This document shows, in pieces, positions 30,660 to 63,274 of a stretch of DNA of 64,000 bases (its first letter is position 1; each line of letters starts with the position of its first letter). The translations under genes were made by a program, and so were the position numbers. The notes beneath the pieces are model-generated. The model was not told the origin of the DNA. It ran no database searches and saw only the letters and a list, made by a program, of their open reading frames with translations. The DNA comes from Tetramitus jugosus. Taxonomy: Eukaryota > Protista > Heterolobosea. The DNA lies in the NCBI GenBank assembly GCA_937625935.1, contig OW569368.1:124001-188000 (forward strand), written 5' to 3'.

Positions 30660-30832
30660 TCGAATGAATGTTATTTATTATCTTTTGCTTGTCCATTCTT
30701 GTTGGCTCTGGAACGAATCATAGCGAGTCGTAATGCAACATTGCGCCATCGTTGTGAAGACCCATTTTCTTCAGCTCGATGGCAACTTCCTTCACTAACA
30801 TCTTTCAGGCGTGATACACCCCCAAATCCAAA

Positions 30833-31194
30833 TTTTTTTTTTTAAATACAACCATTGGTTGCTCATTTTACTTCTTTGTTGATTCTCTGTATCGGTTTCG
30901 TGACGGCAGAATGCCGTCACTATTGACTTAAGTAGTTGCAAATGCTCGTAGAGCATTAGAAACCAGCAATCTCCTTTGAACTCGTGAAGAGGCGTCGCAT
31001 CACCTCCACGCACCTCCTCTTTGTATGATAGACAAATTGTTGGGCCTTCTCACTTGCCTTCTTCTTCTCCATCCCACTCTTCATCAGTCCTTTGATCACC
31101 TGTTTCAGCGCCCTTGTTTCAATACCCAGCATACCAAGCATGTATTCCTTGCTTGTTTTCCTCCGCTTATTGACTAGGAACGCACCGCCGTCGT
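30833..31194 (-). mobile_element. 5'-truncated non-LTR retrotransposon copy E upstream of tRNA-Thr
   Basis: Poly(A) tail (T 30833-30843) and shared 3' terminal motif. It encodes RKTSKEYMLGMLGIE...KRRCVEVMRRLF, homologous to the ORF2 C-terminus of copy B. Exact 11-bp TSD CCAAATCCAAA at 30822-30832 and 31195-31205. Confidence 0.92.
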
Positions 31195-31247
31195 CCAAAT
31201 CCAAAAATAGAAATTTCCTCCACTGATGGAGAAATTCGATAGAAAAG

Positions 31248-31320
31248 GGCTCCTTAGCACAGGTGGCAGTGCGCTGTCCTAGTAAGACAGAGGTCACGAG
31301 TTCGAGTCTCGTAGGAGCCT
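31248..31320 (+). tRNA. tRNA-Thr(AGT)
   Basis: Cloverleaf GGCTCCT/AGGAGCC, GCAC/GTGC, CTGTC-CT AGT AA-GACAG, ACGAG-TTCGAGT-CTCGT, with a T-run terminator just downstream. Confidence 0.96.
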
Positions 31321-31346
31321 ACTCACTTTTTGTTGTTTCAGAAAGC

Positions 31347-48636: not shown

Positions 48637-49107
48637 ATGAGATTCTCTTTGGTTCTTGCTGTTCTGTTGCTCGTTGTGACTTTTGTTTCTGCTTACTCTG
48701 TTCGTCGTGTTTCAATGAAGCACATCGCTATGAGTGATATGCCAGCATTGACTTTCAGATGCTATGCGCTTACTCCTGGATGCATGGGACAAGAAGCTTA
48801 TGATTTGTACATGGCAAAGCACAATATTCTGAGCGAAGCTATGATCAGATTCCCAGCCGAGATTAGATGTAGAGCTCTCATTCCAGAGTGCATCGGAGAA
48901 AAGGCTTACACTCACTACAAGATGTTGAGCGACATTAGAGCACCAGATTTTCCAATCAAGAACGACAGAATAAGATATTTGATGGCTGATGTTCCTGTTC
49001 CAAACAGTCTTAAGAAGGGTGCCCGATTCTGCAAAGCTTTGACTCCTTCATGCATGGGCAGAGAAGCCTATGAGAAGTACATTCAACGCCTCATCAACCA
49101 ATTGTAA
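48637..49107 (+). CDS. Small secreted protein with three CxALxPxCxGxxAY repeats
   Basis: Signal peptide followed by CYALTPGCMGQEAY, CRALIPECIGEKAY and CKALTPSCMGREAY. Confidence 0.8.
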   Translation: MRFSLVLAVLLLVVTFVSAYSVRRVSMKHIAMSDMPALTFRCYALTPGCMGQEAYDLYMAKHNILSEAMIRFPAEIRCRALIPECIGEKAYTHYKMLSDIRAPDFPIKNDRIRYLMADVPVPNSLKKGARFCKALTPSCMGREAYEKYIQRLINQL

Positions 49108-49350
49108 AGTGTGGCAATAAATGCTTTCTCAATTTTCTCCTGATCACTATTTTTTAAGACTACATTTCGTCCACTTTCTTGTTGTTTCCTTGTGTGTTTT
49201 ACGACAATGTCCGGTATTGTAATACAATTGTAAAATATCTTCACTGAAATAGAAGATGAACAATAGTGTAATCTTCCTCTCGTGGTCCACATTGCATACC
49301 AATTTTGGTGAACCTGTCACCCAATTCCATTTTTCTGCGCTTTTTGAGTA

Positions 49351-50419
49351 TTTTTTTTTTTTTTGTTCCATACAACCAAGTGTGCGCAAGCACACGATTG
49401 CTCATTTATTGACTTGTTTTGTGAGTGACGACCCGTAAGGCGTCATTCACTCTTCTTCTCTTGTTGTCCCCTACGGTGCACCTACAGGTTGGAAGAATCA
49501 CTCAGGTGAGTGTTTTGGTTGATGCCCTTCATCAAAGAGCGTAACCTTGTAGTAGGACCGTCGATGGACACAGAGCCATCTGTTGTTTTTTTCTTGTCTT
49601 GGGCCTTGTTGCTCCTCAGATCACCCAGTGTGATCCTGGCACTCCTCTTCTTGTTGTCATTGAGTTGTGGACTCTGAATCTCCTTTTCGGAGTCATCATC
49701 CACATCCACAATGACTGGTTCGTCCTCTGTCAAACCATACCTTTTGCGTGCAGCAGCAAGTGCCAATGCAGCAATTTCTTTCTTCACTCTGGCAAACACT
49801 GGAGAAGTGGCATTCACTTGCTCCTGAATTAGCCGATTTTCAGTGCTGAGCCGTGCAACAGGCAATGATGGCAGTGGTGTTGTACTCCTTTGTTCTTCTG
49901 CCTCCATTAGATCTGGAGCAGTTCTTTGTGCAACTTCTAGTTCCCGTATCGGAACCGGTTTGTTGCTCTCTTGACCCTTTGTCTTTGCCAATTCCTTGGT
50001 GAGTTCTGTGACCTGTCGACGCAGTGCGTCAACCACCGTCAGCAGCTCCTCGTACATCTTCGTCAACCTCTTGTTGACAGCCTTGAGGGGATCATGTGGC
50101 CTCTCGACGTATCGAGTGACTGTGGCCTTTACCTTGTTCTCTCCATTGAGCACTGCTCGTACATAAAAGTCATAGATGCGGTCACCCTTGACCGTCATCC
50201 ATGCCATAAAGCGTAGCTGGTCTTTCCTCTTGATGACTTGGACTCGGTTGAGCCAGTCACCAAACTCCTCTCCTATCTATCTTGCCATGACTGAGAGACA
50301 CCAATACCGTTGCCAGTAATGACGACCTCCTTCATTTGCGGCGACTTTCCGTGCAGTGTCCCACAATGCATACCTGCTCTAGCCGTACGCCACCAATTTT
50401 GTTGAAGCACCATGAAAAA
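49351..50419 (-). mobile_element. Copy D: non-autonomous ORF1-only retroelement with a decayed ORF1
   Basis: Poly(A) and family 3' motif. KEVVITG, IGEEFGDWLNRVQV..FMAWMTVKGDRIYDF and DPLKAVNKRL match copy B ORF1 KEVVIKG, IGSRYKEWVTRVHV..FIAWVNVKDDKLYEF and DPMKLMSKKM. Frameshift and stop near 50270-50300; no ORF2. Confidence 0.85.
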
Positions 50420-50425
50420 CTGCGT

Positions 50426-50509
50426 TTTTTTTAAAATACAACCGTTTCGGTTGCTCACTTTATTGTCTTTTGTTTTCTTCAACCATCGCTCTTTGAGCGA
50501 TGGCCCTTG
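50426..50509 (-). mobile_element. Copy C: ~85-bp 3'-UTR-only retrotransposon stub
   Basis: Poly(A), then AATACAACC..GGTTGCTCACTTTATTGTC and a CCATCGCTC/GAGCGATGG hairpin, closely resembling the 3' end of copy A. Flanked by TSD copies. Confidence 0.88.
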
Positions 50510-50648
50510 AAAAATTGCGTTTTTTTTTTTTTTTAATACAACCAACTGGTTGCTCTGTTTTATTTTCTGGGTATTTACAATGGATAACGCTCGAAGAGCG
50601 TTATCTCCTCCATTACTTCTTAATTCTAACAATGGTGCCCGTAGGGCG

Positions 50649-53600
50649 TCATTGTTTTGTTGCTTCCTTATAGGAGGTGTACAATTGGTGAAGGGTTTCG
50701 ACGCACCGCCTTTTCACCTTGTTCACAAATGTTCTGGCTCTCTTTTCCGCCATTTCTTTTTTGATTCCGTTCTTCCTCATTCCTCTCATAATTTGATCCA
50801 CTGCTACCTTCTCTACACCCATCATACCTAGGAGGAACTCTTTGCTTGATTTTCGGTTTGGTTGCACTGTCAGCTTACCGCCTTTCCAACAGACGGAGTC
50901 GAACCATAGGTCAATCTGGTGTTTTGGGTGGATTCCCAGACCACTCAGCTCATCACCCACCGACATAGCCAGTCTTCTTCGAGTCAATATGGCCCTCGGA
51001 CAGCGAATGAGACAATGTAGTATAGTCTCTGACTCCTTGTGGCATCTTTCGCACACTGTTGGAGCTTCATTCTTTCCATACAATACCCTCATGACTTCTC
51101 GGGTGTGCAAGGTACCACTCCGCACTTGTGCATAAAACCACTCCAGCTTTCTGTCAATCTTGTGTGGGTACTTTAGAAAACTAAAGTCCACCCCACCGCA
51201 CATAGCTTCAATTTGTAACCACCATAGACCACCAATATCTTTAATCCTGACAAGTCTCTCATGATCCATCCGCAACTGTATTTGCTCTCTGCTCTCGACA
51301 GGGATTTGACCTATCATCAAAGTTTGCACTACAGAGACTCTTGAGTTAGGCTCTAACGTCGGAGCACACTCGCATTCATTCATTTGTGACACCATTATTT
51401 TTAACAGCTCATGAGACCTTGGTCCAATCTTGCATCCAGGGAACTTGTTTTTGATCTCTTTTAAACTCATGACCCTCACACCAACCATCAGCTGACTTCT
51501 GTTAGTGATTCCACTCTTGAACAGCTTCTTGAGAATAGTAGTTGGAACATATCGGGCAATGTTACAATCGTCACAATTGCGGTGGATGCTCTCATTATTG
51601 AGTGTAATACCATGAATGTGCATCCGTTGTGCGCACCACTTAAGGTAAGTGTTTTTGACGTACTCGAGGCGGTTGCTTGACTGGAAGACATTCTCACGTT
51701 GGAATGTTTGTGTGTGCTTGATTTCCTCAAGCGTGTCAAGCAGCAACTGCTTCGCCTCCGTGTCCCTCTTACCCGACATCATTGAGCCAATAAACCAGGC
51801 GGTCTGTACTGTTATTGTTTCCTCTATGTCATTGAGACCCACTGATCCACGATCGCTGCTTACCGACAGTAACTCGGAAGGAAACTGTGACATCGCTCTT
51901 GAGCCATGTTTGACCAGCATCCTTCCCAGTCTGTTCACTCTGAGAAGTCCCCCAGCCGTCCAGTCTGTGAATTCGGACGAGTACTTGAAGATAGGGTGTA
52001 TACAAGTGTTAACGACCCTTGCCACCTGTCGCGGAGTCAGTTTCATCATCTTCAGTCGGTTCGCTACTCTTTGTGATTTGTTCCAAGCTTGAGCCACTTG
52101 TTGTTTCGTGTCACTTCAGGTTGGTGAAGAGACCCAGTGCTCTGAACCCATGACCACTGTTTCGGGCCCTGACAACTGTACCATCCACCTCTATATCGTG
52201 GGCTCCATCCTCATCAAATTGCCGAACGTAGAGCTCAAGTTTATCGGGGTGCATCGACATGCGAAGCAACGATAGCACCTCTGACATCGCCTTGGCTGCT
52301 CGTTCAATGTCTGCTCGGGATTCAGAGAACAGATTACAATCGTCAACATACGACGCGTTCCACAATTGTTGGGACATAGCCTTGTACCCTTCCATCCGTT
52401 TTTCAACATACATTAACACAGTTTGGTGTACGAGAATGTATGTTGTGGGTGATAGAGAATCACCCTGTCTTGTTCCTTTTCCGATAGGGAAGCTTCTTGA
52501 TAAGGACTTCGTCAACACACTTGCGAAATTGTCCTCAACCATACCACTCACCAGCCTCACGATGTTGTCCGGGAACTCAAAAAATTCATAGACAGACCGG
52601 ATTGCGTTGTGAGGTACCGAGTCGAAGGCCTTTGATATATCCGTAAGCAACAGAAACAGTTGTTTTTTGTTCCGATTGGCGTGGTCAATGACACCTCTGA
52701 TTACAGAAAGCTTTTCTCTAATGTCCCTGAACCTTCTGCCTCCGCCTTGCACGTTTGAGAAGATTCCACCCGTCTCTGCCGCCTTGGAGATTCTGCAGTT
52801 GATTAACTTGGTGTACAGCTTTGATACGGTACTCAACAAACAGATTGGTCTGTAGTTGGCAGGATTAGAAGTGTCTCCCTTCTTGAAAGCTGGGATAATT
52901 ATCCCCTCCTTCCACATTTTGGGAAAAATCCCTTGTTTGGTGATGTTGTTGAAGAAATCAGCAAGGATTTCTGACAGATCATACCTGTAGTCACGCTCTT
53001 TAGTGATGGGGACTTTCAGCATTTCGTTATGTATTTTGTCGACACCGGGACATTTACGGTTTCTCAGCCAACCAATGGCTTTGCTAACTTCCTCTGTAGT
53101 GATTGGAGTGAACGCTTCGTGTATTGTTGCTCTGTGCCCATCACTTTTTAAAGCTCTTAGGTAATCCATGTTGGCAACTTCAGGGGAAAATGCACCTTCA
53201 AAGTACTCCGCGGCCAAATTACCCACTGTGATCTCATCTGTGTACTCTATTCCATTCTTCTTCACTCTAGAAAGTCTTACTCGAGAGCTCTTCTTCGCGG
53301 TTGATGCTGAGAAGAAGGTGGACGGGTCAATGAACTCGGATGTCCTGGCCTTCCATTCCCACTTTCTAAACTTTTGATTGGCTTTGCGTACCCTCTCTCT
53401 GTGCAAGGACTCGCTAGTAAGTTTCAGCGCTTCCCATGCTCTGTCATTGCGAGATCCGACAATTTCCCAACCACACACTGCTTCCAATGCACTGCTCCAT
53501 CTTCGATCTGACAGGTAACGAATCAACGCTTCTCTGTTTTTCAACAACCTCTTGACCTTTCGATTGTTGCTCCACATCTTCACTGTTCTCTCCACTTCAA

Positions 53601-54477
53601 ACACTTTAGCATGTTTGATGATAGCGGATGTTATAATTTGACACTGCTCATTTACATCTTCTATTGCAGTTACACTACTCTCCTCTAGCTCCCTGATGAG
53701 CTCCTTACCATAATGGACCCATCTAAGGTCTTTCTTGTCCTTGGGGAACTTAAACATCGTTCCACTATATCCAGTATTTGTGCCAGTTCTGGCTTTTATC
53801 GTGACTAAAGTAGGTACATGATCGCTATGTACACCATTGGATGTGAACATTTCTACCTTATCAATTGCATCTATTATTGCTTGGTTGCACCATACTGAAT
53901 CTATTCTCGACGACGACTTCCTGCGAAAGAATGTATGGAATCTTTCTACTCCCACTACCTCATTGGTGTCACACAGGTTGTTCTCCTTCAACACTTGCAG
54001 TAGTAATGGCGTGTTCTCGTCTACTCTGTTCGAGGATCGGTCAGTAGCAGCTGTAACGGCATTATGATCACCACCTAAAATGAACTTTCCTTGGACAGCG
54101 TATTTGCTAATCGTTGCTTCAATTGATTTGTAATGTTCACGGTTCTTTTTGTGAGGTCCATAGTGATTAGCTATCGTGATCGACTCATCTACCGTAGAAA
54201 CCTTGATTACTTGCAACCTGGATTCACTGTGCATCACCCCATATGATGGCACTGTGGTGGTTCTGACTATTGCTGCCAAGTGTTGATTGGGAAGATCACA
54301 AACCAGAACACACTTAATTCTCTCTAACTTCCTGCTGAGTACCTTACACCATGCTTCGTCAATGTTAGTTGCCTCCTGTATCAGCAACACATCTATTTGC
54401 TCTGACTCCAAAAAGTCCACGACATCATTGGCTTTGCCCTTGATGCCGTTGATGTTGTACCACATCACTTTCAACAT
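50649..54477 (-). CDS. Copy B ORF2: APE endonuclease, reverse transcriptase and CCHC finger, broken by an apparent 2-nt deletion at ~52113
   Basis: WYNINGI, LIQEA, GGDHN, SRIDSVW, SDHVP; NYRPICL, DISKAFDSV, GTRQGDSLSP, YVDD; CERC..ETILHCLIRC. A frame switch restores LK(G)DTKQQVAQAW versus LRGTTKMQKEQAW in copy A. Confidence 0.95.
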
Positions 54478-55773
54478 AATGGAGATGTGTGGTCCGACTG
54501 GGGTTGAGATACCTCATTATCGTGTATCACATGGCTTGTCACTGCAAGCGCTACTTCCTTACTGGCTTGAACAATATCAATCATATTGGCCAGCCGAACC
54601 GGGGTCTTCAACAAAGCTCTTTTTCTTGAGTTTTCTGAGAGGACCGAATTCGGACCTCTCTTTCCACTCTCCTTTATAGGGGTATCTTCGCGAGGCACAG
54701 TGAACTTGGAGATGAGTGCTTGGCTATCTGATAGGGCGCGCTCCCGTCTCTTCTCTCTTCTCGCTCTCACTAGCATTTTCCTTCTTTCCTCAAGCAGCTG
54801 GCCTTCAGTGTTCTCATTTTCACCCGTAGGTAGTGGATCATTACCGATCGTAGTGCTCTCCACTACCAGTTCAACACTTGGCTCTATCTCCGGAGTTGTG
54901 AGTACCATTGGCGTCAACATTCATCTCTTCTACCATCTCAGTTGGTTCAACGTCTGTTGTTTGTTCTCCAGCCTCCGTGACATCTATTTCAGAGATTGTT
55001 TCATCTCCTTGCATTGAAATGTCGTTGTCAATAGGGATAGACACACCGGGTATTTCACCTACTCTTTGGGGTTCTTCTCTCATTGATTTATGTGTTTTCC
55101 CGTTCCTCTTCTTGTTCAAAGCCTTCTTTAGGCTCGCTTCCAGTTGTGCCACTCTTCTCTTTAGCTCTTCCATCTGCTTGTTTAAGGATTCATTGATCCT
55201 TTGCATCTTCTTGGACATTAGTTTCATTGGATCTTGATTTCTTATGACATGGCTAATCTCAGCTCCAATGTGCTTGTCCCCAATAACAGCATGAGCATAT
55301 GACTGGGATGTCATTGTGACAAATGCTGTGCTGCCCTTGACTTCTACTTGACGTACTCTGTCCTCCCCAATGAGTTTAGCGATGTCGTCTCTTGACCTAC
55401 CGAGAACCTTGTGAACCACAAGTTTTTTCTCCGAGTCAAGACCTCTCTTGATGGATGCATGGGTGTTTGCGATTCTTCTTGACTCATTGAACATCTCAGC
55501 AAACTCATAGAGTTTATCGTCCTTCACGTTCACCCACGCAATAAACTGGCCTTTCTCCCATCTTCTGACATGTACACGAGTCACCCACTCTTTGTACCTT
55601 GAGCCAATCATTCTTGCAATTGTTGGTGCTGTGTTATGGCACTGTGTACCTTTGATCACGACTTCTTTTTTGTTGATGCTACTTCCAATGTTCTGGACTG
55701 TCCATACCGCGTACCCGTCACGCGAGTACTCCCTTGCCCCCGGAGAGGATGGAATGTTTGCGTTTGTTTCCAT
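54471..55773 (-). CDS. Copy B ORF1 (two RRM-like segments, coiled coil, acidic/basic tail), split into two frames near 54871-54920
   Basis: ORFs 54871..55773 and 54471..54920. LVVHKV and GSTAFVTM are RNP-like motifs. The second frame stops overlapping the ORF2 ATG (ATGTTGA). Confidence 0.8.
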
Positions 55774-55795
55774 GGTTTTTTTTTAAAAATTGCGT

Positions 55796-58700
55796 TTTTT
55801 TTTTTTTTTTTTTTTTTAATACAACCATATCGGTTGCTCACTTTATTGTCTGTTATATTCATTAGCCATCGCTCGCAGAGCGGTGGCTCTTGGTCACCAT
55901 TTTGATTCCCCAATGACGCTCGGAGAGCGTCATTGCTGTTGTTTCTCTTTCGTTGTAGTGAATAGGTGGAGGAGAGTCGTGAGACACTATTCACGTAAGT
56001 TTTAGCTATCTTATCTGCTGTTGCTGTCTTTACTCCATTTGCTATCAGACCTTCCGCGATGTCGCTGACGGCCTCTGTCTCAACACCCATCATTCCCATC
56101 AGGAACTCCCGGCTCGTTCTTCTCAACGGTCTCCTGACCACTTCTCCGCCTACTATCCTCACATTGTCGAACCATATATTGATACAGCTGGTATCAGCAA
56201 CCCCCATCTTGATAATTTCTGCTGCCACCGTCATCGCGAGGCATCTTCTGGCACGAACCGCTCTAGGGCACCGAATTAGACAGTGGAGCACACTTTCGGG
56301 CTCCTGACTGCACCACACACATTTGGTGGGATCGTTGTCTGAGTTGTAGAGGACTCTTACAACTTCTGCGGTATGGAGCGTCCCACTGAGGACTTGCATC
56401 TGAAACCACACAAGCTGCCTGTCTATACTGTGGGGATTTTTGAGGAAGCTGAAGTCCGCTTCACTTCTACTAACGGCCTTTTGTAACCACCACCTCTCAC
56501 ATTCTTCCACTCTTCTGTTCCTTTCCTGGTCAAATAGTGACTGCAGATGCTTCCTGTTTTCTACGTGAAACATCCCTTTGTAGAGTGCGGGTTCTTTTTC
56601 TACCCTATTGATTAGCTGGGAACACATGCATTCCTTCATTTGGCCAATCATTATATTCAGCACTTGGTGGGACGTGACTCCAACTTTGCACTTAGGGAAC
56701 AGGAGCTTGAATTCTTTGAGACACAGCGGCTGTCCATCAACAACTAATTGGTCACGGCTGTTTATGCCTGCTTGGAAAAGCTTCTTGAGCGTAGTAGATG
56801 GTACGTATCTAGCGAGGCAGCAATCGTCACATTGCCTTCTTTTGTTGGTACTTAGGATGATGTCGTGCGTGTGCATCCTCTCTGCACACCATTTGTGATA
56901 GGAATGTTTGACAAACTCCAGCCTGTTCCTTGACTGATACACATTCTCTTCTTGGAATGTTTGTTGTTGCTTGATATCCTCAAGCGTATCAATGAACAGC
57001 TTTCGAGCCTCTGTGTCTTTTTTCCCGTTGACCATGGACATCACGAACCATGCCGTCTGAACAGTAACTGATTCCTCTATATCCTTGAGTCCTACCAATC
57101 CCAGCTCACTACTGACGGACAGTAGTTCTGTTGGGAACCTTTTCATGGCTTTTGATCCGTACTTCACCAATGAGCGACCCAGCTCATTGACCTTATCAAA
57201 CCACATAGTCGTCCAGTCTGTGAATTCCGCCGCATATGTGAAGATTGGGTGGATGCATGTGTTTACAACACGACTCACTTGCCTGGCCGTGAGTCTCATC
57301 AGTTTCAGCCTAACCACCACCCGTTGTGCCTTGAGCCAGGCTTGCTCTTTCTGCATCTTCGTAGTGCCCCTGAGATTGGTGTATAGCCCCAATGCCCTGA
57401 ACACTTGTTTGTTGTTTCTCGCGGGAACTAATGCCCCATCAACAGTGATGTCGTTGGCTGTATTGCTATTGAGCTTCCTGACATACAACTCCAGCTTATC
57501 TGGATGCATAGTCATACGTAGCCATCGCAATACAGTAGACATTGCCTTCGCGGCCCTTTCGATGTCCTCACGTGACTCTGCGAACAGGTTACAGTCATCA
57601 ACATACGCTGCGTTCCATAGTCGTTGTGAAATTGTGTGCACTCCCTTCATTCTTTGGTCCACATACAAGAGAACAACCTGATGGACAAGTATGTAGGTAG
57701 TCGGGGACAGTGAATCTCCTTGTCGAGTGCCCTTGCCTATTCGGAATCTCCGTGATAGCGAGGAAGTTAAAACCCGCGCGTGATTATCTCGTACCATTCC
57801 GCTAACTAGTCTTACAATCCCCTCAGGGAATCCGAAGAACCTGTAAACAGCCTCAATGGCGTTATGAGGGACTGAGTCAAATGCCTTGGAGATATCCGTA
57901 AGCAGTAAGAAGAGCTGCTTATCATGCCGGTTGGCATGGTCCACAACTCCTCTGATTAGGGAGAGCTTCTCTCGTATATCGCGAAATCTCCTTCCCCCAC
58001 CTTGGGCCTTCGTGAATACATTTCCATCTTCAGCAGCTTTTGAGACACGTTGGTTCAGCAACTTGGTGTATAGTTTTGATAAAGAACTTAATAGACAGAT
58101 AGGCCGATAGTTCTCAGGCATTGTGACATCCCCCTTTTTGAAAGCTGGAATGATAATGCATTCCTTCCATGCCCTTGGGAAGTATCCCGTTCGCGTGATG
58201 AGGTTGAAAAGCCCACAGAGTGTCTCTGCCAATTCCCACCTGTAATCCCTTTTCCTGGTGCAAGGGAGCTTGATCATTTCATTGTGTATCCCATCTACCC
58301 CTGGGCATTTCCTATTCCTTAACCATCTCATTGCCTCTGCTACTTCCTCTGTCTTGAAAGGTGTGAAGGCCTTTCTTAATTCGTACTTGTTGCTGCGACA
58401 TTCCAAGAGCGACAGGAATCCCATACTCGCCTCTTCCTTCTTGAATGCTTCTTCGAAGTAGTCCGCGGCTGCGTCTCCAACCGTCTGTGCATCTGTGTAC
58501 TGCATTCCTTGTTTTGTCACTCTAGATAATCTCACCCGACCGCTCTTCTTGGCTGATGCAGCTGAGAAGAACTTGGACGGATCGCTAAACTCAGCAGTTC
58601 TTGCTGCCCATTCCCACTTCCTATACTTCTGAGCATTCTTCTTTGCTCGAGCTTGGTGCAATCTTCCATTGATATGCTTAAGTGTTTCCAATACCCTGCC

Positions 58701-59309
58701 AATCCTCGTGATATTCCTCTCTGTTCTGCCACATATCCGCTCTAGACTAGGGCTCCACTGGCGTTGTTGCATGTATTCCATCAGCGTTGCTCTATGTTTG
58801 AGCATCCTTCTGACTGCTCTGTTTTGTCTCCATATCTTAGACTCGTTTATCACTTGGAATGACTGGGCATGCTTGAGGATGGCATTAGTGATAGTCTCAC
58901 ATTGGACATCCACATCGTCCACATCCTGTATCTTGCACCGTTCCAATTCAGTAACAACGTTATGGGCATACTGCACCCATCTTACATCATCCTTTTTCTT
59001 TGGAAAGGCGTAGGACACTCGCTTGTTTGGTGTTGGGGGTTGCTTCTCCATCTTCAATGTTAGTTGTGTTGGAACGTGGTCGCTTCCTACACCGTTCCTG
59101 GTGTACATCACGATAGCTACGCACTCTTCAAGTGCAGCTCTGTTACACCACACGGTGTCAATGCGAGATGATGATCCTTTTCTATAGTACGTGTGAAACC
59201 TCTCAGCTCCCAAAAGCTCGTTAACGTCGAATAGGTTGTTGTCTTTCATTGTCTCCACCAGAGCATTAGTGTTGCAATCGATTCTGCTCGCCGTTCTGTC
59301 AGAGGCTAT
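55796..59309 (-). mobile_element. Copy A: 5'-truncated non-LTR retrotransposon (starts inside the APE domain; RT and CCHC in one open frame)
   Basis: SRIDTVW, SDHVP, GTRQGDSLSP, YVDD, CVWC..ESVLHCLIRC; poly(A) 55795-55817; TSD (T)AAAAATTGCGT at both ends. A small deletion near 55975 frameshifts the final codons (natural TGA at 55930-55932). Confidence 0.95.
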
Positions 59310-59363
59310 AAAAATTGCGTTTTTTGAGTTTTTATGAAATATATCGATTTGTTGTAATATCTC

Positions 59364-59434
59364 TCTCCTATGGTCTAGTGGTATGATAGCGGACTTTGAA
59401 TCCGTTGACGGTGGTTCGATTCCACCTAGGAGAA
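59364..59434 (+). tRNA. tRNA-Gln(TTG)
   Basis: TCTCCTA/TAGGAGA acceptor stem, GCGGA-CT TTG AA-TCCGT, GGTGG-TTCGATT-CCACC, with TTTT downstream. Confidence 0.94.
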
Positions 59435-59656
59435 CTTTTGGTTCATACGGTTTTGTTTTTCACTACTCAACACAAACAAAAAGGTAGATAACGGGTACAA
59501 GGACCGGGGTTGACAAGTCATGATTCTCGCATAATGCACCCTATTAGCCTAAATCTTGGACCAATATCAACCGCTTTTTTTTTGGGAGACAAACAAAACA
59601 CTTTTTCAAATAAAACAACATAAAAGAGCATCCAAGTCACTACTGAAACAAAGATC

Positions 59657-61723: not shown

Positions 61724-63274
61724 CTAACAGTGATTTTTAACATTGAGCTCAAAAGGGTCAATCTTGGCATTAAATACTTCTCCAGTGCTCAAATTCTCCA
61801 TGGTAAAATATCCTTCCATGCTACCGGTTGGAGTAGAGCTGTTAGTGGAGCTGCAATATGAGAAAGTGGACCCAGGTTCGATCACAGGATGCAAACCAAT
61901 GACACCGGGTCCGTTAACTGAATCTGTTACACCATTCGCGTCCTTAATAACCCAACATCGACTCCTCAGTTGGCACTTGAGATTCTTTGGGGCATTCTCA
62001 TCCATTGAAATCTTGATTCGATAGGAAAAGAAGTAATATGGCTCTACATTGTCTATATCTGAACTTTCTGGTCTGAATAGAGCATTACATTGTATTCGAA
62101 CCCCATTGGTTGTAGTGTCTGAACCAATACTGCCATCCAGCGGGAACCGCTCAATGTATCCATCATTGAATTCGTACAAGTTCCTCTGTGTCAAATCAAT
62201 TACGTATTTCTCGAACCATTCAATAAAGGAACCACTAAGAACAAACGGAGTTCCTCGACCTGAGATCTGAATCACCATACCACGACGATAAATTGTATTC
62301 ATGAAAGTAAAGTCTTTCATAGCGATCGCGATCAACATACGGCCACCTCTGATAATGGGCAAACAATTCGTCATCCACTTCAGATTCTGACGAAAAAATT
62401 GGTTCTCAAAGACAACACTGTCTAGCTTGAGAAACGTGAGGAAACTGAGCTCGTCATACACTATATACCCTCCGAACAAGGGCGAGGGTGCCTCATCTTG
62501 AGTCGATTGACCGTTGTGCATTCTATAAAAACACTCGAGTTCTTTTGGAATTGAGCAAGCTTCATCAATCTGACAATCAGCCAAAAACTGCTGCATTTCC
62601 TCACGAGAAGCACCATCTAACAGAGACTCAAACACTGAAGGGCAATTCTTGTGCAAGTAAGAATCCAACTGGTCGCTCAGAGTTTTAACTTTGCGGAACA
62701 CGGAAGCCAACCCACCATACTGCAATTGATACTCTCTGTAGCAGAGCTTGTTCATTTTGGCTGCAAGAAGTTCATATTGATCATTCACAGGTTCACTATG
62801 ATTATGCAACAATCCACGAGAGGGACTTGAGTTCAACTGTGCCCATACTTGATCGTCATTCACAATCTTTTGAACAAGTGCATAAAAGCCTCGATACGAA
62901 GCAACATCACAACGTTCTTCACCCACGCGAGCCATCTTTGTCACAGAGGGAGACAAAGCATCACCTGTTCGAGTATCATCACCTTCCTCGTCCAGGTCGT
63001 CGTCCCTCTTCTCCGACAAACGTCGCAACACGTGGGCATCGGACAAGCCATGAGGAACGTCCAACAACCATACATACTTGCACAACCACTTCCACAAAGA
63101 AGCATGACCAGACAATTGATAAAATCTGTAGCTCACACTGGAACAGGCACACAAATCTACGGGACCGAGGAATGACAAGAGCGCGATGATCGTGTCATCC
63201 GGTAAATCTTTGGTGAAATCTTCTGTCATCAAAACTTGCGATGTCATTTTCGGAATGTGCTCGGACTTGTTCAT
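61724..63274 (-). CDS. FBXO3: F-box + SMI1/KNR4 + ApaG protein (FBXO3/SKIP16-like)
   Basis: F-box LPDDTIIALLSFL, IPKELECFYRMHNGQ, and ApaG FSYRIKI..CQLRSRCWVI..VNGPGVIGLHP..GSMEGYF. Confidence 0.88.
   Translation of the reverse strand: MNKSEHIPKMTSQVLMTEDFTKDLPDDTIIALLSFLGPVDLCACSSVSYRFYQLSGHASLWKWLCKYVWLLDVPHGLSDAHVLRRLSEKRDDDLDEEGDDTRTGDALSPSVTKMARVGEERCDVASYRGFYALVQKIVNDDQVWAQLNSSPSRGLLHNHSEPVNDQYELLAAKMNKLCYREYQLQYGGLASVFRKVKTLSDQLDSYLHKNCPSVFESLLDGASREEMQQFLADCQIDEACSIPKELECFYRMHNGQSTQDEAPSPLFGGYIVYDELSFLTFLKLDSVVFENQFFRQNLKWMTNCLPIIRGGRMLIAIAMKDFTFMNTIYRRGMVIQISGRGTPFVLSGSFIEWFEKYVIDLTQRNLYEFNDGYIERFPLDGSIGSDTTTNGVRIQCNALFRPESSDIDNVEPYYFFSYRIKISMDENAPKNLKCQLRSRCWVIKDANGVTDSVNGPGVIGLHPVIEPGSTFSYCSSTNSSTPTGSMEGYFTMENLSTGEVFNAKIDPFELNVKNHC

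Follow-up and report, generated by a model that had tools for sequence, protein, structure and literature searches.

The closest described counterparts of the elements analysed here are the Dictyostelium retrotransposons TRE5-A and TRE5-C (PMC3159450, PMC5006619), which likewise carry ORF1 and an ORF2 with APE, RT and a zinc finger, end in poly(A), insert head-to-head approximately 45-50 bp upstream of tRNA genes, give rise to ORF1-only derivatives and possess a structured 3' UTR. The structure of the TRE5-A C-module has been modelled and interpreted as RNA, and the sections consulted report neither GNA loops nor a polarity towards the cDNA strand. In the stringent LINEs UnaL2, ZfL2, SART1 and R2, a conserved stem-loop lies just 5' of the 3' tail (PMC5135761). 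A different kind of hairpin, d(C-GNA-G) or d(C-GNNA-G), is found in the origins of phages G4, St-1 and alpha3, in RSF1010 ssiA, in the N4 early promoters and at Streptomyces telomeres, where it sits on single-stranded or extruded DNA at which primase or polymerase docks (PMC13037366, PMC3201870, PMC4496689, PMC5449611). The C-GTTA-G DNA mini-hairpin has a Tm of 83.5 C, as against 39 C for r(GCGAAAGC) (PMC13037366). For non-LTR retrotransposons, protection of the first-strand cDNA and synthesis of the second strand are still open questions, for which host repair has been suggested (PMC13486585).

The hairpins studied here are located in the 3' UTR of an APE- and RT-encoding non-LTR retrotransposon family of a heterolobosean genome. 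The host was placed at this level by its best named matches, to Naegleria gruberi (53%) and Willaertia magna (41%). The family has at least 115 ends; sequence was fetched for 80 loci and the remainder were counted by pattern only. Three intact copies of ORF2 (1293-1318 aa) match the Pfam domains Exo_endo_phos, RVT_1 and, weakly, zf-RVT, and the CCHC motif of the C-terminal zinc knuckle is invariant. The APE endonuclease, the RT and the zinc knuckle, together with a poly(A) tail, a target-site duplication and 5' truncation, place the family among the LINEs, and the closest solved-structure matches to its RT are the R2 and L1 RTs, with similar scores (~1e-19). As with TRE5, the elements are oriented head-to-head with their targets, about 45 bp upstream of tRNA genes, which adjoin many of the family's loci. 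The host, however, belongs to another supergroup, close sequence kinship with TRE5 was not found, and there was no TRE protein among the homologue matches to the family's proteins. Unlike Proto1 of Naegleria, which has an RNase H domain in ORF2, the family gave no RNase H match in ORF2 at E <= 1 in a Pfam-type domain search of the intact copies. A distant relative that does bear RNase H (23% identity) lacks the hairpins. In an Rfam search tRNA was the sole match. The features of the window, by which is meant the whole 64-kb stretch of DNA analysed, are as follows.

30832..31194, minus strand: element copy E, short, 5'-truncated, head-to-head with tRNA-Thr
30900..30920, plus strand: copy E hairpin H1, A-GAA-T loop, stem sequence unrelated to A and B
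30941..30957, plus strand: copy E hairpin H2, C-GTA-G loop, overlapping the ORF2 stop position
31247..31322, plus strand: tRNA-Thr(AGT), target of copy E
49350..50415, minus strand: element copy D, an ORF1-like frame alone (49482-50207) with its own 3' UTR
49380..49395, plus strand: extension at the apex of copy D H0, with a c-GCAA-g loop that one further copy has inverted
49421..49450, plus strand: copy D hairpin, family form C-GTA-G, G>A change in the window copy, one G.T pair
50483..50503, plus strand: copy C hairpin H1, TTT loop, member of a clade with inverted or decayed loop; the 5' truncation of copy C falls just beyond it
50520..55784, minus strand: element copy B, with ORF1 (54871-55773), ORF2 in two pieces, 3' UTR and poly(A)
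50538..50553, minus strand: copy B terminal hairpin H0
50582..50606, plus strand: copy B hairpin H1, C-GAA-G loop
50628..50656, plus strand: copy B hairpin H2, C-GTA-G loop, two adjacent G.T pairs, overlapping the ORF2 stop
52111-54477 and 50649-52097, minus strand: copy B ORF2 pieces, APE+RT and zinc knuckle respectively
55795..59309, minus strand: element copy A, with 5'-truncated ORF2 (RT), a 13-nt gap near the ORF2 end, 3' UTR and poly(A)
55821..55837, minus strand: copy A terminal hairpin H0, adjoining poly(A), outer pair G.U in mRNA and A.C on the antisense strand
55842..55847, minus strand: copy A polyadenylation signal AATAAA, between H1 and H0, recurring in nearly all ends
55864..55888, plus strand: copy A hairpin H1, C-GCA-G loop on an 11-bp stem; its one antisense-strand T.G pair is common to 7 copies of its subfamily
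55911..55935, plus strand: copy A hairpin H2, C-GGA-G loop on a perfect 11-bp stem, the 5' arm of which, read on the sense strand, includes the ORF2 stop codon position
59310..59319, plus strand: target-site duplication, repeated at 55785 and 50510 with a variant at 50416, separating the stacked copies and ending 45 bp before tRNA-Gln
59364..59435, plus strand: tRNA-Gln(TTG), target of the A-B-C-D stack, which is inserted 45 bp from it

All eight hairpins proposed in a first-pass annotation of the window were found at their coordinates and with their loops. The window contains 20 perfect stems of at least 7 bp with loops of 3-5 nt; element hairpins account for the two longest of these (10 and 11 bp) and for both triloop stems of 9 bp, and folding of the 3' UTRs of A, B and E compared with shuffles gave z = -3.5 to -6.3. 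The non-Watson-Crick pairs are, as had been observed, G.T on the plus strand in A1, B1, B2 and D2; that of B1 is terminal, at the stem end, and hence weak evidence. The two loops described for copy D are both present, but the GTAA reading is a point mutant of the C-GTA-G seen in two other D copies, and c-GCAA-g is better regarded as an apical extension of H0, a hairpin otherwise of mRNA polarity.

Read on the antisense strand, which is that of the first-strand cDNA, the H2 loop is G-N-A in 51 of the 52 true H2 hairpins fetched and in 38 of 42 oriented pattern matches genome-wide, and the H1 loop is G-N-A in 73 of 97 by hand count. Per lineage, in a table compiled by hand, G..A loops fall on the antisense strand 38 times and on the sense strand once, with four loops of other kinds. 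The middle base varies freely and C-G closes 31 of the 33 distinct hairpins, which is the form of the GNA/GNNA mini-hairpins (G-N-A or G-N-N-A, free middle base, C-G closing). In divergent clades GCA gives way to GTCA or GTTA, loops that belong to DNA mini-hairpins and not to the RNA GNRA class; a loop AAA is also present as a fixed variant, and this too is accommodated by sheared purine loops. Exceptions are a 6-nt CGGAAA loop at H2 in one subfamily and a TT loop in a single distant relative. Metagenomic relatives with 28-82% protein identity keep G-N-A, in two cases on unrelated stems. A genome-wide GNA bias of chance hairpins is ruled out, since about 10 of 99 non-element stems have GNA or TNC loops, near the expected 1/8.

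Loop inversions recur. Exact inversions of H2 occur in 3 of 42 copies, none of which grew into a subfamily, and inversions have spread in one H1 clade only. The TTT loop of copy C, named as a caveat in the first-pass annotation, is no lone exception and belongs there: TTC, TTT or ATT at H1 (18 of 97 copies) mark one amplified clade. This clade also holds the sole inherited A.C pair, so that the polarity of H1 is dispensable in it.

Covariation is seen at all 10 stem pairs, and pairing reaches 97.3% on the antisense strand versus 93.9% on the sense strand. Inherited mismatches on the antisense strand number 8 G.T against 1 A.C (p about 0.02), a bias that rests on some 9-10 independent events, whereas single-copy mismatches are 6 G.T and 5 A.C; the split between the two classes is not significant alone (Fisher p = 0.16). 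Background mutation was judged from private variants together with a non-reversible rate matrix, in place of ancestral sequences. Six tree rows, produced artefactually where a short copy continued into its neighbouring element, were dropped from the later background count. Mutational strand bias was rejected as the source of the G.T excess because background transitions carry no such bias (0.42; ~0.49 from rates). The breakpoints of the copies are enriched roughly 2.4-fold in hairpins, a rough figure: a few of the rows are mis-paired, and no account is taken of how 5' truncation decays with length.

The GNA enrichment and the G.T bias persist genome-wide and in other organisms, and the sense RNA cannot pair in the shifted UNCG register that the first-pass annotation had considered: in that register the closing pair is C.A and the stem is broken, slid controls are 26-36% paired, and family E reads A-UUC-U, without the G. 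This supports selection on antisense-strand folding, as had been suggested, be it in single-stranded cDNA, cruciform DNA or antisense RNA. A polarity of H1 and H2 towards the antisense strand is, across the aligned copies, demonstrated in the statistical sense; that the folding is of DNA we infer from known thermodynamics.

In contrast to H1 and H2, the terminal hairpin H0 is polarised towards the mRNA, a point that had been missed. Its outer pair is G.U in mRNA in 82 of 85 copies, and it is retained, with a changed stem, in the relative of 28% identity. It resembles the 3' RNA stem-loop of stringent LINEs in polarity and position and is likely to be an RNA recognition stem-loop. H1 and H2 are unlike this class, being additional hairpins with near-perfect stems of 9-13 bp and 3-nt loops; in loop chemistry and wobble pairs they suit the opposite strand better. 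The UTR therefore appears to hold both an RNA signal and DNA-strand hairpins.

With the known DNA mini-hairpins H1 and H2 share the loop consensus, the free middle base, the preference for C-G closing and the strand specificity. The known cases are all prokaryotic or phage replicons or promoters, whereas this one is a eukaryotic LINE, and a literature search matched no paper to GNA mini-hairpins in a eukaryotic non-LTR retrotransposon. It is suggested here, with about even confidence, that H1 and H2 are d(C-GNA-G) mini-hairpins on which selection acts in the first-strand cDNA while it is single-stranded. H0, adjoining poly(A), would function in the mRNA as a conventional stem-loop, to which ORF2p probably binds and from which target-primed reverse transcription starts. 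H1 and H2 would fold on the antisense strand with sheared G.A loops, as d(C-GNA-G) or d(C-GNNA-G), and the simplest moment at which that strand alone is single-stranded would be after the first-strand cDNA has been made and the RNA template lost. Spontaneous extrusion of the hairpins from the RNA:DNA hybrid is energetically unfavourable; the hybrid is more stable than the two separate hairpins by 4-18 kcal/mol, so that removal of the RNA must come before folding. At 45-125 nt from the primer junction, H1 and H2 occupy the part of the cDNA that would be synthesised first and copied last, where they may form a compact docking site resistant to nuclease and SSB. Such a site would protect the junction-proximal cDNA and retain ORF2p, or a host priming or repair factor, until the second strand is made. 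By analogy, the mini-hairpins might act like a phage single-strand origin, in docking or priming, securing the 3' junction and aiding the second strand, although this further step is put forward tentatively.

The loops and wobble pairs of H1 and H2 suit a single-stranded DNA copy better than RNA, hinting at an undescribed step by which insertion is completed. To our knowledge the cis signals described at LINE 3' ends are all RNA structures; if the proposal is true, target-primed reverse transcription would have here its first example of a cis-acting signal made of cDNA structure. A strand-polarised DNA mini-hairpin beside an RNA stem-loop would offer a precise, mutable handle on the second-strand step, because inversion of the three-base loop spares the stem, and may be of use in designing 3' modules for retroelement-based gene insertion. 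More generally, wobble polarity and loop chemistry can reveal which strand, and which nucleic acid, a repeat hairpin serves.

It is conceivable, though unlikely, that H1 and H2 are instead stem-loops of the mRNA, their loops being U-N-C triloops, or UNAC where clades have diverged, and that they are read by ORF1p or ORF2p or act on translation termination, G-N-A being merely the complement. Both stringent LINEs (PMC5135761) and TRE5-A (PMC3159450) depend on stem-loops of the 3' UTR. H2 overlaps the ORF2 stop codon, the tetraloops read on the sense strand as UGAC and UAAC, which resemble RNA UNAC loops, and a protein recognising U and C would likewise resist loop flips. Energy models fold both strands almost equally well, a failure to separate them that reflects the lack of a GNA bonus in the models. 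The inherited mismatches would however be 8 A.C and 1 G.U in mRNA, the reverse of RNA-helix tolerance, while H0 of the same UTR shows G.U, and the agreement with C-GNA-G and C-GNNA-G would have to be fortuitous. We know of no stable class of RNA UNC triloops.

Also quite improbable is a cruciform in the integrated double-stranded copy, with the GNA loop on the template-strand arm, serving as a signal for transcript pausing or termination or contributing to an antisense promoter comparable to the TRE5-A C-module. Transcription uses the antisense strand as its template, and at physiological supercoiling C-GNA-G is able to drive extrusion (PMC4496689). The loop inversions and deletions at the hairpins suggest that these structures arise in genomic DNA, and the clade whose H1 is inverted was still amplified. 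Since both strands fold in a cruciform, though, no polarity of G.T against A.C is predicted, and extrusion alone is indifferent to loop orientation, yet flipped H2 was never fixed.

Selection in an antisense RNA from the 3' end of the element would account for G.U tolerance on that strand, and the C-module of TRE5-A yields antisense RNA (PMC3159450); the GCAA of copy D is moreover a GNRA loop. We regard it as very doubtful, because the triloop is dominant, neither of the tetraloop variants, GUCA and GUUA, is a GNRA loop, and the mini-hairpins are far less stable as RNA (PMC13037366). Least probable of all are palindromes without a folding function, whether from fold-back copying of nascent cDNA nucleated by GNA mini-hairpins, which would be strand-specific and GNA-biased and would predict the direction of the one pair that changed from C-G through T.G to T-A, or as double-stranded binding sites with the well-conserved GCTC-N3-GAGC core, given that 12 ORF2 regions contain no GNA hairpins of at least 7 bp, that hairpin position is fixed across 28% protein identity, and that the core was replaced in four lineages with pairing kept while the outer pairs covary freely.

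In the read run X1, the type of which is unrecorded, coverage was greatest over the 3' UTR.

The 3' UTR of the element keeps a fixed order, which on the antisense strand (the first-strand cDNA strand, and the + strand of the window) runs from poly(T) through a short terminal hairpin (H0) and the complement of AATAAA to two further hairpins, H1 and H2. All of the hairpins lie where the first-pass annotation had placed them, and their folding departs from that of shuffled sequences by much more than chance allows (z -3.5 to -6.3). Divergent clades have one longer hairpin only. In most subfamilies the ORF2 stop codon falls inside the sense-strand 5' arm of H2, as TGA or TAA (window 50628-50656, 55911-55935, 30941-30957), and the opposite arm follows changes of the last ORF2 codons. 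In another family with the same terminal motif (L056:957(-), L047:836(-)), H0 is extended and its loop is inverted between the two loci; the hairpin downstream of it differs and, read on the antisense strand, has the loop CTTG.

The G-N-A loops first noticed in the window persist throughout the genome. H2 has such a loop in 51 of 52 true hairpins from 80 fetched loci (GTA 19, GCA 17, GGA 15), and its oriented genome-wide patterns comprise 38/42 G-N-A, 3/42 exact inversions and 1/42 point change. By hand count H1 is G-N-A in 73 of the 97 listed copies, the others being TTT (8), ATT (6), AAA (5), TTC (4) and GCG (1); TTC is GAA exactly inverted, and in the tree TTT, ATT and most TTC loops sit in a single clade. 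Divergent clades carry GCA, GTCA or GTTA at the equivalent place, and 13 of 16 loops in metagenomic relatives are GAA, GCA or GTA. A G-N-A loop is kept in one relative at 28% protein identity and stands on wholly different stems in another at 43%; no such hairpin was found in a more distant RNase H-bearing element. Counted by lineage, G..A loops are antisense in 38, sense in 1 and replaced by others in 4, although these 43 are related and so not independent trials. All six unrelated stem sequences share the same loop orientation.

Loop inversions arose independently in several subfamilies and affect about 7% of H2 copies, with private changes between copies inside subfamilies at about 0.8%. 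A flipped orientation has become fixed in a subfamily once for H1 and never for H2, and this recurrence with so little fixation indicates that hairpin orientation is under selection; if it were neutral, we infer, it would be thoroughly mixed across a family whose protein identities range over 28-95%. Deletion and truncation ends were about 2.4-fold denser inside hairpins in a rough test, and several copies stop just beyond a loop. Together with the inversions, these breakpoints imply that the hairpins form in some template during copying. Single copies with independent, exact 3-nt loop inversions (G000 C37:168559, C42:149003, C11:367154, C21:57514; L088) illustrate a micro-inversion hotspot that is useful for measuring template switching.

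The stems tell more about the strand. Two-sided changes occur at 10 of 10 pairs among 33 distinct hairpins, where 97.3% of cells are paired on the antisense strand versus 93.9% on the sense strand. Mismatches present in at least two copies were treated as inherited, each counted once by hand, and on the antisense strand these are 8 G.T against 1 A.C (p = 0.02, even odds), or 7:1 (p = 0.035) with two same-column events merged. The sole inherited A.C belongs to the clade with the flipped H1 loop; single-copy mismatches number 6 G.T and 5 A.C, and one relative has an additional internal G.T and another one A.C. The G-T bias claimed earlier persists in this larger set, and background transitions do not favour it, G.T having a share of 0.42 among ORF2 private variants and about 0.49 at third positions under a non-reversible model. 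H0 provides an internal control: its outer pair reads G.U on the mRNA strand in 82/85 copies, with two more G.U pairs in the subfamily of copy D (family D), so that one UTR holds a hairpin of mRNA polarity and two of the opposite kind.

Selection against flips would be the same for a sense U-N-C and an antisense G-N-A loop and cannot by itself tell the strand. Sense-RNA loops would oppose flips equally well, but we consider them doubtful, as wobble polarity favours the antisense strand and the loops resemble a DNA class: the closing pair is C-G in 31/33 hairpins, which gives d(GNA) loops about 2 kcal/mol extra (PMC3201870), and G-N-A exchanges with the non-GNRA tetraloops GTCA and GTTA, all three belonging to a single class of DNA mini-hairpins whose RNA counterparts are far less stable (PMC13037366). 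A shifted sense-strand UNCG loop, the caveat raised in the first-pass annotation, was rejected because that register cannot pair and the subfamily of copy E lacks the G there. A template-strand cruciform is unlikely, since it folds both strands and therefore predicts no wobble polarity. First-strand cDNA after RNA removal fits better, as the antisense strand is then the only one free. Hairpins in antisense RNA are very unlikely given the GTCA and GTTA loops, and a by-product or double-stranded site is the least probable reading. Of the earlier proposal of selection in cDNA, cruciform or antisense RNA, the strand is supported, with first-strand cDNA as the likeliest molecule. Contig depth in X1, a sequencing run of the organism with unlabelled type, peaks at 280-410 thousand over the 3' UTR (window 55828-55960) and is 40-170 thousand in ORF2; the peak could be RNA or merely a surplus of short copies.

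With middling confidence we favour an account in which H0 would be the RNA handle of ORF2p and H1 and H2 would be DNA hairpins that shield or mark the cDNA next to the junction until second-strand synthesis is finished. The RNA:DNA hybrid is computed to outdo the two hairpins in stability by 4-18 kcal/mol, so folding would come after RNA loss. H1 and H2 may be redundant, which would explain the loss of H1 polarity in one clade. DNA loops of this kind withstand nucleases specific for single strands, are weakly bound by SSB and mark the places where a primase or polymerase docks in Streptomyces telomeres, phages and plasmids (PMC13037366, PMC4496689, PMC5449611). How non-LTR elements gain their second strand is poorly understood, and the step depends on repair machinery (PMC13486585). 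Stem-loops at LINE 3' ends are common and are described as RNA signals (PMC5135761, PMC3159450), and our literature search, of incomplete coverage, found no paper that links GNA or cDNA hairpins to non-LTR elements. The hairpin observation is real, conserved and unusual.

The assembly comprises 26.35 Mb in 56 contigs, and the window is eukaryotic, rich in genes and poor in introns. The best named matches of a host gene are in Naegleria gruberi and Willaertia magna, which places the host among the Heterolobosea. Copies A to E are non-LTR retrotransposon 3' ends on its minus strand; intact ORF2 copies outside it encode about 1290 amino acids with APE endonuclease, RT and zinc knuckle, and a domain search of them found no RNase H. 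Copies A to D, four different subfamilies at one site (window 49335-59435), are stacked head-to-tail and separated by repeats of a 10-bp target duplication, which stops 45 bp upstream of a tRNA-Gln gene, the newest probably being the closest to it. Copy E is sited upstream of tRNA-Thr, and at many other loci a tRNA gene adjoins the 5' end of the element. This is the insertion geometry of Dictyostelium TRE5 (PMC5006619), and the element represents a new LINE lineage that targets tRNA genes and works in the manner of TRE5. Relatives from metagenomes, with protein identity of about 50%, also adjoin tRNA-Lys genes (L089:520-594, L092:230-303), and tRNA targeting therefore reaches beyond this genome. 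In copy B, about 11 nt separate the 5' junction from the start of ORF1 (window 54871-55784), so the element seems almost without a 5' UTR. Family D is ORF1-only, with its own 3' UTR and the shared terminal motif (window 49350-50415; further copies at L059:195, L020:42, L002:6134 and L052:1180); its ORF1 is weakly similar to that of copy B (29% over 68 aa), and its plan resembles non-autonomous TRE5-A.2.

Two other genes in the window are:
48637-49107, + strand, 156-aa protein just downstream of the element stack
61724-63274, - strand, F-box, SMI1/KNR4 and ApaG domain protein of FBXO3-like layout

The 156-aa protein gave no confident Pfam match; its start resembles a signal peptide, and it has three repeats that contain Cys.
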